From Haliotis cracherodii (lineage: Eukaryota), in NCBI RefSeq assembly GCF_022045235.1, contig NW_027266298.1, positions 1,550,001 to 1,614,000 on the forward strand: DNA of 64,000 nucleotides, in the 5' to 3' direction. The notes beneath the pieces are model-generated. The model did no database searches. It was not told the DNA's origin and saw nothing but the letters and a program-made list of their open reading frames with translations. Below are positions 19,164 to 21,040 of the stretch, piece by piece. The translations under genes and the position numbers were made by a program. Positions within the stretch are counted from its first letter, which is position 1. Every line of letters starts with the position of its first letter.

Positions 19164-19220
19164 TTTTTTTTTTCTTTTTTTTCTTTTTAATAAATTTAAT
19201 GCACAGAAAATGGGAATACA

Positions 19221-19293
19221 AATGCGGACAGCGCAGAAAGCTTGCCACTCCACATTAAAAGAAATTATCACAAAAGGGCGTGGAGTGGCAGCT
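19221..19293 (-). other. Conserved 3'-UTR stem-loop (H1)
   Basis: TGCCACTCCAC/GTGGAGTGGCA stem, TGTGATA in the loop, followed by GCGCTGTCCGC. Confidence 0.75.
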
Positions 19294-19382
19294 ATAACAA
19301 AAGTAAACTATAGAAGAAATGAGATTACAATACTTGTTTGTCAGACATTAGTTAACACTTGCACAAGATGGAATTAATGAGT

Positions 19383-20855
19383 TCACTCGCCTACCCTTGA
19401 GAGGGACCTAATCTCAATTTCACTAAGATCCATCTGGTAGTCTCTATTCCTTTCAATGTCATAAAGCAGGTGTTTATTCCTGTGAATTTTCTCTGTTAGT
19501 ATTAGACGAAGGGTTACTTTAAAGGCATCTGGATCCTCTGGGGCGAAAGCTCTGACACAGTTAGTAAGGTCGTACTTTTTTTCTGTAACCTTGTAATGTT
19601 GATGGTTTGCATCCCAGTACAGTTTGACATTAAATGTCCAATGTTTCTTCATTAAATGAAGCTCCTTTTTGTGTCGATCTTCCCACACACAATGTACATA
19701 GGGAGGTAGCCACGTGAGATCATAAGGGCTCATTTTCGAAGAAGACTGGGAATCCTTCTTGACGAGTTTAGGATGAACATCAACAGTGTCAACAGACCCA
19801 GAACTAACTGGGCACTGATATTCCTCTGGGACCTGGGCGAGTAGAATGTCCGTCTGTGACTGTTGCTCTGCCCAACTAGTGGATGCAGAACGATCCTCAG
19901 AATCACTGGCAACTTTTTTCCTCTTATCAACTTCATCAGGTAGATCCTGCGCGCACTGCTTCCTTTTTGGAGGTAAAACTTGTTCAGATTCCATTGCTTC
20001 CTCCTCAGACTCAGATGAACCCATGTCAGAACCGGCTGATTGACTGTCCTCACTAGCAATGTCTTCAGGCACAGAAACCACATCTGTTGTTTGGTTATCC
20101 ATCATATCAGTCACAGGCTCCGAATCAGAAACTCCACTAGCATGGCCATCAATCACGTCATCAGGTACTTTTTTCACCATGTCAGTATCGACTTCAACAA
20201 TAACAGGGGCCACAGTAGGTTTTCCAGTAGAATGAGTGGGTATATCCGTACCTGGACAACGAGCACGCACATGTCCAACTGAGTGGCACTTCAGGCAGAT
20301 AGGTAAGCGTCCCGGTGCAGTTACAAGCATGGATTGCTTGTCACCAAACCGCACTATATGGGGTATGCACGTACGTTCAGACTCTGTCAGCTCCATCCTT
20401 ACAATGCGAATTCCAGTGTATATATTCACTCCATCCACATCCACGAATTCTCGGAAAGCATCCAACACTTTGCCATAGCGGCTAAAAAAATCCTTCAAAA
20501 AATCACTGGTGACTGTGGCATGCAGCCAATGGATCCTTAATGGAATCATAAAGACACCATACGCATAAAAGTACAGTTTTTCAGCACCATGGGTAACACA
20601 GTTCAAGTCCAAGAGTTTCTTGGCCGTAGACACAGATGTTAAGGTTACATATACTTGACCTGCACGTTCTGTTCTCCATATGGCCTGGCAATCAGGCAAT
20701 GACAAGTCAGGAACAACAGTTGTCAGCAGTCGAGCAAAGTCCGGAACTGTAGTGAAACGAGCAGTGGAGTAAACCCTCACAGTCCTGGATTCAACCTCCT
20801 TGTCAACGAATTTGTCAGGGACTGGTCCAGCGTTGACAGACGAGTTGTAAGCCAT
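19383..20855 (-). CDS. H1 ORF1 protein with extra C-terminal domain (490 aa, intact)
   Basis: LRIHWLH, FFSRYGKV, VTAPGRLPICLKCHSVGH; acidic linker; C-terminal about 110 aa homologous to the H2 protein only. Confidence 0.9.
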   Translation of the reverse strand: MAYNSSVNAGPVPDKFVDKEVESRTVRVYSTARFTTVPDFARLLTTVVPDLSLPDCQAIWRTERAGQVYVTLTSVSTAKKLLDLNCVTHGAEKLYFYAYGVFMIPLRIHWLHATVTSDFLKDFFSRYGKVLDAFREFVDVDGVNIYTGIRIVRMELTESERTCIPHIVRFGDKQSMLVTAPGRLPICLKCHSVGHVRARCPGTDIPTHSTGKPTVAPVIVEVDTDMVKKVPDDVIDGHASGVSDSEPVTDMMDNQTTDVVSVPEDIASEDSQSAGSDMGSSESEEEAMESEQVLPPKRKQCAQDLPDEVDKRKKVASDSEDRSASTSWAEQQSQTDILLAQVPEEYQCPVSSGSVDTVDVHPKLVKKDSQSSSKMSPYDLTWLPPYVHCVWEDRHKKELHLMKKHWTFNVKLYWDANHQHYKVTEKKYDLTNCVRAFAPEDPDAFKVTLRLILTEKIHRNKHLLYDIERNRDYQMDLSEIEIRSLSRVGE

Positions 20856-20870
20856 GGTGAAGAGAGGTGA

Positions 20871-20945
20871 GGGGAGACCAGTAAAGATCACACAGCTTAG
20901 TAGCTGATTCCCACTCGTAGACCTGGTGAAGGGAAAAGTTGATTA
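20871..20945 (-). promoter_or_regulatory. Acceptor-like site plus 5'-UTR RNA motif (H1)
   Basis: ACTTTTCCCTTCACCAG|GTCTAC GAGTGGGAAT CAGCT..AGCTG TGT GATCT..GGTCTCCCC. Confidence 0.65.
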
Positions 20946-21040
20946 TGGCAAAGCACACATGAAAACATGGAAGCAACAAAGAACAGAGACTTTTTTTCTT
21001 TTTGATAAAATGTATTGCCTAAATGGAATTTCTTACAGAC

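Follow-up and report, generated by a model that had tools for sequence, protein, structure and literature searches.

We analyzed a 64,000-nucleotide stretch of the black abalone Haliotis cracherodii (G000:C35:1550001–1614000, part of a 1.18-Gb assembly; hereafter the window), in which two short elements, H1 and H2, lie at the insertion site that full-length retrotransposons occupy in genes of the small nuclear RNA (snRNA) U2. We consider it likely that H1 and H2 are non-autonomous derivatives of site-specific long interspersed elements (LINEs) of the apurinic/apyrimidinic endonuclease (APE) type, similar to Tx1/Keno, that keep only the first open reading frame (ORF1). They would belong to an old, still diversifying clade that uses the ORF2 protein (ORF2p) of a partner in trans and supplies its own ORF1 protein (ORF1p). 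H1 and H2 have retained the 5′ untranslated region (UTR) module, a functional ORF1, the 3′ stem-loop, and the poly(A) signal and tail; they have lost ORF2 and the inter-ORF region and have gained a private C-terminal domain (CTD) of about 110 amino acids (aa).

H1 occupies positions 19163–20990 of the window on the minus strand, including 12 U2-like nucleotides (nt) at its 5′ end and the A-tail, as determined by reading the sequence and its junctions. H2 was read in the same way at 49032–50985, also on the minus strand. Both intervals agree within 1–3 bases with those of an earlier note on this DNA, and its description of H1 and H2 as ORF1-only elements at the U2 site of their full-length neighbours holds. 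Each carries one intact ORF on the minus strand: 490 aa in H1 (19383–20855, stop included) and 482 aa in H2 (49347–50795, stop included). The H1 length is counted from the ATG that aligns with all other families; a GTG start would give 502 aa. Pfam analysis of both ORF1s revealed no reverse transcriptase (RT) or endonuclease, tblastn with ORF2 matched neighbouring elements only, and the ORF listing contained no second long ORF in either element. Downstream of ORF1, both elements have the poly(A) signal ATTAAA, located at 19195–19200 in H1, where signal and A-rich tail span 19163–19200, and at 49067–49072 in H2, where they span 49032–49072 and the A-tail is 25 nt long (49032–49056).

The U2 junctions all lie inside the sequence GUAGUA, at about nt 35/36, with an uncertainty of one position owing to the A-tail. 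The A-tail of H1 ends at 19163, and the 3′ part of U2 follows directly from 19162 (19006–19162, minus strand), starting inside this branch-point-binding sequence. H2 is followed by a U2 3′ part (48875–49031) and preceded by a U2 5′ part (50986–51021), both on the minus strand, with the 5′ junction at about 50985/50986. H1 has no adjacent U2 5′ part of its own. Its 5′ end (20978–20990) abuts the A-tail of E6 (20991–27005, minus strand), a degenerate full-length element with ORF2 in pieces, which lies between a U2 5′ part and H1 in a tandem composite. The 12-mer at the 5′ end of H1 (20979–20990, minus strand) equals, with one mismatch, the first 12 nt of U2 beyond the insertion site, and the identical 12 nt are found at the 5′ junction with U2 of H3, a related element described below. 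It may have arisen by target-site duplication or may be a leader that H1 carries. A 12-bp target-site duplication formed when H1 entered the E6/U2 junction fits the arrangement; alternatively, E6 may have inserted into the U2-like leader of H1.

The alignment of the H1 and H2 ORF1 proteins extends from end to end (37% identity, E 3e-100), whereas both match the autonomous ORF1s over the first ~210 aa only (34–41% identity, E 1e-44 to 1e-51), so that the proposal in the earlier note that the two elements are closer to each other than to the autonomous families is borne out. At the DNA level, blastn found short 5′ and 3′ pieces common to H1 and H2 and nothing else. The autonomous ORF1s have a low-complexity tail ending in DPP and no CTD; the DPP end is absent from the ORF1s of H1 and H2, as had also been noted.

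In the ORF1 proteins of H1 and H2, tandem RNA-recognition motifs (RRMs) are followed by a CCHC zinc knuckle, an acidic, poorly conserved linker, and the CTD of about 110 aa. The N-terminal region of H1 (20247–20855, minus strand) was characterized with an AlphaFold2 (AF2) model and Foldseek. Its ~203 residues were modelled as two RRM folds with a predicted local distance difference test (pLDDT) score of 85, and the best Foldseek match was RRM1–2 of HuR (E 4.8e-8, probability 1.0). The CX2CX4HX4C knuckle residues C187, C190, H195, and C200 are invariant in 20 sequences. A coiled coil is absent, and the ORF1p of H1 and H2 is of the tandem RRM plus CCHC type.

The CTDs of H1 (19386–19709, minus strand) and H2 (49350–49682, minus strand) are 50% identical and define type A, an orphan alpha/beta domain. 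The H1 CTD was modelled (pLDDT 78.7) in the order helix-helix-strand-strand-helix-helix-strand-helix, from an alignment (A1) that mixes possibly unrelated rows. Searches for relatives of the CTD gave no Foldseek match in the Protein Data Bank at E ≤ 0.001, no fold match in a wide structure comparison (VIA-align, best Z 4.1), and nothing usable in the ESM Atlas. Comparison with ORF2 and the middle ORF of the full-length elements yielded hhalign probabilities of at most 0.2%, and a hidden Markov model (HMM) of the CTD run against 1.84 billion representative proteins matched Haliotis proteins only, apart from a 97-aa fragment and a spurious hemicentin. The type A CTD, also present in H7, is homologous to the type B CTD of H3 and H4 (hhalign 95.7%, E 9.5e-9). 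For the C-terminal regions of H5, H6, and the U1-targeted families described below, no homology to types A or B was detected, and the idea of a single CTD common to all ORF1-only families was rejected. The nearest database proteins are H. cracherodii ‘uncharacterized proteins’ (95% identity), followed at greater distance by proteins of H. asinina and Patella. ORF1-only ORFs are annotated by the National Center for Biotechnology Information (NCBI) as protein-coding, under the name ‘uncharacterized protein’.

A copy joining this kind of ORF1 and CTD to an ORF2 would contradict the ORF1-only reading, and none was found among the ten genomic places with a type A CTD and one suspect locus, in arrays that were read in part. 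All ten places are copies of H1, H2, or H7 or degenerate relatives, and in every one for which DNA was obtained, the element closes with 3′ UTR and A-tail and U2 comes next. For H3 to H7, the flanking U2 5′ and 3′ parts are only 1.8–1.95 kb apart. The suspect locus, C35:1334455, has an ORF1 43% identical to that of H1 upstream of an ORF2. It was rejected, being an autonomous ORF1 of the E7 type (60% identical to E7) beside a truncated H2-like fragment.

H1 and H2 are members of a wider group. A genome search with H1 ORF1 gave 88 matches, and 30 of these loci were retrieved. Among them, further ORF1-only elements of ~1.8–1.95 kb between U2 5′ and 3′ parts were recognized as H3 (loci L004–7, contig C5), H4 (L008/9), H5 (L017/18), H6 (L020/21), and H7 (L022/26). 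Four more families are targeted to U1 genes (L014, L015, L019, and L023/24; C32 1.99–2.03 Mb and C51 0.23 Mb), where a U1 5′ part precedes the element and the rest of U1 comes after its A-tail. In total, there are at least 11 ORF1-only families, at least seven U2-targeted and at least four U1-targeted. The U1 array also contains an intact autonomous element (L032, G000:C32:1987700–1994200; ORF1 366 aa, ORF2 1148 aa), whose ORF2 is 42% identical to the U2-type ORF2 and whose ORF1 is only ~29–30% identical to the ORF1-only proteins. In the U1 arrays, autonomous and ORF1-only elements alike have entered the gene around nt 33 of U1.

In a tree of the N-terminal domain, the ORF1-only proteins form one group (support 93/89, or 97/97 when the U1 autonomous ORF1 is added), and the U2 autonomous ORF1s form a separate group (100/99). 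H2 is the earliest ORF1-only branch. The U1 families (98/97) fall inside the ORF1-only group, beside H1/H3/H4 and H6/H7. Of two H. asinina proteins, one (P0004) groups with H1/H3/H4 (100/99) and the other (P0005), the one with a significant CTD match, with H5. As both lie inside sub-clades, diversification must be older than the split of these abalones. The earlier note had proposed an old lineage of two elements. Its age, its separation from the neighbouring elements, and the rejection of fresh deletions agree with the tree and with saturated synonymous divergence (below); its extent needed revision, given at least 11 families, some of them in U1 genes. A further protein of the ORF1-only clade (P0006, 437 aa) was found on a Logan contig of 1715 nt, the size of a whole ORF1-only element or transcript.

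We then consider selection on ORF1. Because the synonymous divergence (dS) between H1 and H2 is saturated (both NG86 and YN00 fail), closer family pairs were used for the ratio of nonsynonymous divergence (dN) to dS. Between H1 and H3 or H4, the N-domain has dN 0.06–0.07 and dS 1.3–1.7, giving dN/dS of 0.03–0.05. Between H3 and H4, dN/dS is 0.05 in the N-domain, 0.53–0.56 in the linker, and 0.18–0.22 in the CTD; the H1 and H7 CTDs give 0.36, and the U1 families 0.26–0.43. These low values indicate that the RRM/CCHC part and the CTD were kept functional while the lineages diverged, the linker being far less constrained. The earlier expectation of purifying selection on ORF1 was thus borne out in the closer pairs, at 0.03–0.05 in the RRM region and 0.18–0.36 in the CTD.

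The same comparisons revealed that different parts of the elements have different nearest relatives. The N-domain of H1 is 88–89% identical to those of H3 and H4; its CTD is of the H2/H7 type (51–59%) and only 19–23% identical to those of H3 and H4. Similarly, the N-domain identity of H6 and H7 is 87%, but over their last 100 aa it falls to 12%. In the DNA of H1, the first ~1180 nt match H3/H4 (73–74%), and nt 710–1805 match H7 (67%). These mosaic identities, together with the C-terminal regions for which no relationship was detected, indicate that the families exchanged blocks.

Both ends of H1 and H2 carry modules that are shared with autonomous elements. Just upstream of the ATG, the 5′ UTR module of H1 (20871–20925, minus strand) consists of a pyrimidine tract, CAG, and a hairpin-bearing motif of ~55 nt ending in GGTCTCCCC; that of H2, with pyrimidine tract, CAG, and conserved motif, is at 50807–50866 (minus strand). 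The motif ending in GGTCTCCCC occurs in every family, ORF1-only and autonomous, U2 and U1. The 3′ UTR module of H1 (19222–19304, minus strand) comprises TGTTA, a 13-bp stem, the loop TGTGATA, and GCGCTGTC, with a minimum free energy (MFE) of −24.6 (z −4.2). In H2 (49090–49173, minus strand; MFE −22.6, z −3.9), the stem has 12 bp and a wholly different sequence, and the TGTGATA loop and GCGCTGTC are the same. All U2 families and the U1 ORF1-only families share this 3′ organization: TGTTA, a stem of 11–14 bp, the invariant TGTGATA loop, the return arm, and GCNCTGT. At least six unrelated stem sequences were found, all of which pair, with MFE z-scores of −3 to −5. A strict pattern written for this module matched the genome at 62 places, and its reversed control at two. 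The 5′ motif and 3′ stem-loop of the earlier note stand as real features of H1 and H2.

Similarity of the 3′ tails was evaluated over the last 115 nt before the A-tail. The tails of H3, H4, and H5 are 83–93% identical to those of the autonomous elements E2, E3, E4, and E6, which are 80–86% identical among themselves, a strong end homology. H1, H6, and H7 form a second tail class (74–82% among themselves). Its nearest autonomous tail is that of E8 (C35:1670900–1671700), which is 75% identical to H7, 68% to H1, and 65% to H6, against a background of shuffled sequences with a mean of 47 and a maximum of 64; the end homology of H1 to an autonomous LINE is accordingly moderate. A genome pattern search with the H-type tail matched ORF1-only elements alone.

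Additional features of these UTR modules were observed. At window 26696–26900 and 47640–47800, the ~55-nt motif that precedes ORF1 is tandemly repeated, with two copies in E3 and three in E6, each after a pyrimidine tract and AG. The 5′ leader of H2, TCTTAGCCAAA (window 50972–51006; H2 copies L011–L013), is complementary to U2 nt ~16–26 just upstream, so that a transcript spanning U2 and H2 could form a fold-back; GAGCCAA leaders similar to that of H2 are present in H5 and H7. A further family with a 3′ module of this kind (TGTTA, stem CACTGCCACC, loop CTGTGATA, and GCACTGTCTGC) was detected at ~35 places distributed over more than 10 contigs and frequently clustered at a spacing of ~10–12 kb. 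Its sites include C1:60238150–60273002, C7:24.21–24.29 Mb, C13:1.08–1.12 Mb, C27:0.70–0.85 Mb, and C34:43.00–43.03 Mb.

The distribution of copies bears on mobility. H2 has three copies beyond the window, two on C5 (99%) and a degenerate one on C35. Between C5 and C35, H2 copies are 99.1–99.4% identical, and the flanking spacers 81–86%. As H2 is far more alike than its flanks, unlike a segmental duplication, H2 must have moved between arrays recently. One copy of H4 sits by itself in a U2 gene and another lies immediately upstream of the full-length element E1, and A-tail lengths vary between copies at the exact target junction. The C5 array contains six ORF1-only elements and, among the scored matches, only a degenerate ORF2, a makeup that fits a supply of ORF2p from elsewhere. 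All H1 copies belong to one E6+H1 composite: two are identical and lie 27.7 kb from each other, and the third is interrupted. This indicates that H1 spread by array duplication. The third copy (C35:1506889–1515555; L003 and L010) has a gap of ~360 bp in the N-domain region and one of ~6.5 kb in the CTD-coding region, the latter possibly another element inserted outside the U2 site. The NCBI model P0001 (417 aa) derives from this broken copy.

From the anatomy of H1 and H2, we infer the following use of ORF2p in trans. The element would be transcribed, probably with or from its U2 unit, and the mRNA would be translated to its own ORF1p, which, in view of the selection on this protein, presumably coats that RNA. 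The ORF2p of an autonomous element would then use the ribonucleoprotein (RNP) as a template and nick U2 inside GUAGUA, and reverse transcription might be primed on the A-tail or the 3′ module. If ORF2p is borrowed, target choice would be set by its donor, which would explain why sister ORF1-only families are located in U1 genes beside a U1-specific autonomous element. Candidate donors are the intact U2-type ORF2s (1150–1170 aa) in the array of H1 and H2 themselves and the intact ORF2 of the U1 array. A more speculative extension, which we regard as possible though rather doubtful, is that of a self-sustaining hyperparasite clade that outlives its partners, switching between U2 and U1 donors, swapping 3′ tails (E or E8 type), and shuffling CTDs. 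In this extension, the CTD would be an adaptor that captures a foreign ORF2p or displaces the ORF1p of the donor.

The data demonstrate how these elements are built, their standing as a clade of their own, the purifying selection on them, the sharing of modules, the exchange of blocks, and the recent movement of H2. As an alternative explanation, the elements might be immobile relics of ancient transposition, and the present copies might have multiplied within and between arrays only through unequal crossing-over, segmental duplication, and gene conversion. The three H1 copies in their shared E6+H1 composite (99–100% identical, 27.7 kb apart) look like this, as do the H3 copies on C5, whose flanks are as alike as the elements (99.6–100%), and no RNA support was found. 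Against it stand the 99.1–99.4% identity of H2 between arrays whose spacers are only 81–86% identical, the two junction contexts of H4, the intact ORFs with dN/dS far below 1, and the A-tails of varying length among copies, and we consider this explanation unlikely. Recent internal deletion of adjacent full-length families, as in the short internally deleted elements (SIDEs) of R2, would account for the same site, the same UTR modules, and the location among full-length elements. It is hardly compatible with an ORF1 N-domain only 34–41% identical to every neighbouring autonomous ORF1, with the separate, well-supported clade, with a CTD that has no counterpart in full-length ORF1, middle ORF, or ORF2, and with blastn matches restricted to short 5′ and 3′ pieces; we therefore regard it as extremely improbable.

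A different alternative is that the ORF1s are domesticated host genes in snRNA arrays, for instance encoding dominant-negative or decoy proteins that restrain autonomous elements, comparable to L1TD1, an exapted ORF1. The constraint seen in both RRM region and CTD, the added orphan domain, the architecture conserved in H. asinina, and the protein-coding annotation at NCBI all agree with domestication. On the other side, there are at least 11 diverged families instead of one orthologous gene, each copy has LINE 5′ and 3′ UTR modules, a poly(A) tail, and an exact LINE target junction, H2 moved between arrays, and modules and 3′ tails were exchanged among families in the manner of transposable elements. 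Taken together, these observations make domestication quite improbable.

Several points weigh against the interpretation of H1 and H2 as ORF1-only elements mobilized by a partner ORF2p. H1 itself may be inactive; it exists only as copies of one composite and has no U2 promoter directly upstream. No RNA run contains H2 sequence. The tail of H2 is at best 57% identical to the autonomous tails found, which is within the shuffled range, that is, at background. The U1 autonomous element lacks a TGTGATA stem-loop and has no more than its last ~20 nt and the A-tail in common with the U1 ORF1-only elements, so ORF2p may recognize a feature other than the stem-loop. In the approximately unbiased (AU) test, a tree that joins the U1 autonomous ORF1, a sequence on a long branch, to the U1 ORF1-only families received p 0.057, which is suggestive but falls short of formal rejection. 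Purifying selection would fit a host-beneficial gene, too. Finally, reading outside the window covered ~130 kb of the genome, and an autonomous element with an H-type ORF1 may exist elsewhere.

The setting of H1 and H2 is an array of U2 units in which genes and elements alike have minus-strand orientation. U2 arrays lie at C35 1.27–1.70 Mb and C5 19.00–19.05 Mb, and U1 arrays on C32, C51, and C6. Rfam identified nine U2 matches in the window, all on the minus strand, and motif mapping revealed seven U2 5′ parts (one of them at 47868–47903) and eight U2 3′ parts with inserts between them, each unit being interrupted within GUAGUA. Considering all U2 matches (window 307–59279), no intact U2 gene is present in the window. 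Eight long matches score 121–127 bits, compared with 181–184 bits for intact copies elsewhere, because the first ~35 model positions align to element tails. Most of the inserts are elements of 5.7–6 kb with ORF1 and an ORF2 that contains Exo_endo_phos (APE), RVT_1, and zf-RVT domains (Pfam); a protein search with ORF2 matched mollusc and metagenome relatives. The 17.5-kb insert E7 is interrupted by a block of plus-strand ORFs (11115–15670, 247–538 aa), which looks like an unrelated element nested in the opposite orientation.

To our knowledge, ORF1-only LINE derivatives are known from few cases (HAL1, HeT-A, and Ag-Sponge), and the contribution of ORF1p under a borrowed ORF2p is still poorly understood. 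The abalone arrays offer an unusually tractable system for this question: the insertions of autonomous and ORF1-only elements fall on a single defined nucleotide position of U2 or U1, many families live side by side in the same arrays, and ORF1, CTD, and 3′ tails are swapped in recognizable blocks in which selection can be read block by block. Such a system could reveal the cis and trans parts needed to hijack a site-specific reverse transcriptase, which matters both for understanding LINEs and for employing site-specific retroelements as insertion tools. The results also extend U2-targeting APE-type LINEs to molluscs and point to U1-targeting LINEs, for which we found no report. Our literature search likewise found no ORF1-only derivative of Tx1/Keno, with Repbase Reports outside the search.

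Published accounts (PMC4640811, PMC4494074) describe Keno, of the Tx1 group, as an APE-type LINE that targets U2 and occurs in frogs, fish, lancelet, and hydra. Keno and Utopia share the 3′ flank, the position of which is given only for Phytophthora, at nt 39 (PMC4640811). By this published description, the autonomous neighbours of H1 and H2 are like Keno: both have APE and RT, and U2 is split in what is probably the region targeted by Keno and Utopia. H1 and H2 have the site, the UTR modules, and the N-domain of ORF1 in common with these abalone neighbours. Keno has not been reported from molluscs. SIDEs of R2 and R1 and short interspersed elements (SINEs) resemble the ORF1-only elements in keeping the ends of a site-specific LINE and using its protein, and the 3′ tail of a partner is shared here as well (H3–H5). 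In contrast, SIDEs and SINEs are non-coding, the abalone elements keep a protein under selection, and the near-identity to a full-length parent that marks SIDEs was not found (ORF1 34–41%, separate clade).

The closest parallels are LINEs that are non-autonomous and retain ORF1, of which HeT-A of Drosophila telomeres (Jockey), HAL1 or half-L1 of mammals (L1; Bao and Jurka, 2010, cited there), and Ag-Sponge (CR1) have been described (PMC5786205). Judged by their sequences, H1 and H2 would belong to this kind: they encode an ORF1p without RT or endonuclease, their ends are of the autonomous type, and they have the hallmarks of target-primed reverse transcription (TPRT) together with independent insertions. 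Ag-Sponge of Anopheles is likewise an ORF1-present, bipartite non-autonomous LINE (PMC5786205), but it belongs to the CR1 clade, has no site specificity, and has no reported added domain. HAL1 is an ORF1-only derivative of an APE-type LINE and a presumed borrower of ORF2p (PMC5786205). However, its ORF1p is of the L1 type, with coiled coil, RRM, and CTD, and its insertions are dispersed, whereas the mollusc elements encode two RRMs and a CCHC knuckle and are strictly site-specific. The term ‘HAL1-like’ in the earlier note is therefore apt only as an analogy and not as membership, since an RRM plus CCHC ORF1p without the L1 coiled coil places H1 and H2 outside HAL1. Closest in logic is HeT-A with TART/TAHRE, an element with ORF1/Gag only that occupies one special kind of site, has RT-encoding relatives present, and is thought to borrow their RT. 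HeT-A differs in belonging to the Jockey clade, residing at chromosome ends instead of a gene site cut by an endonuclease, and benefiting the host, whereas the abalone elements are probably Tx1-like, lie in U2 and U1 genes, and form many parallel families with an orphan CTD. The ORF1-present non-autonomous LINE is thus a kind already known, and its snRNA-gene-specific version with an orphan CTD is a new variant.

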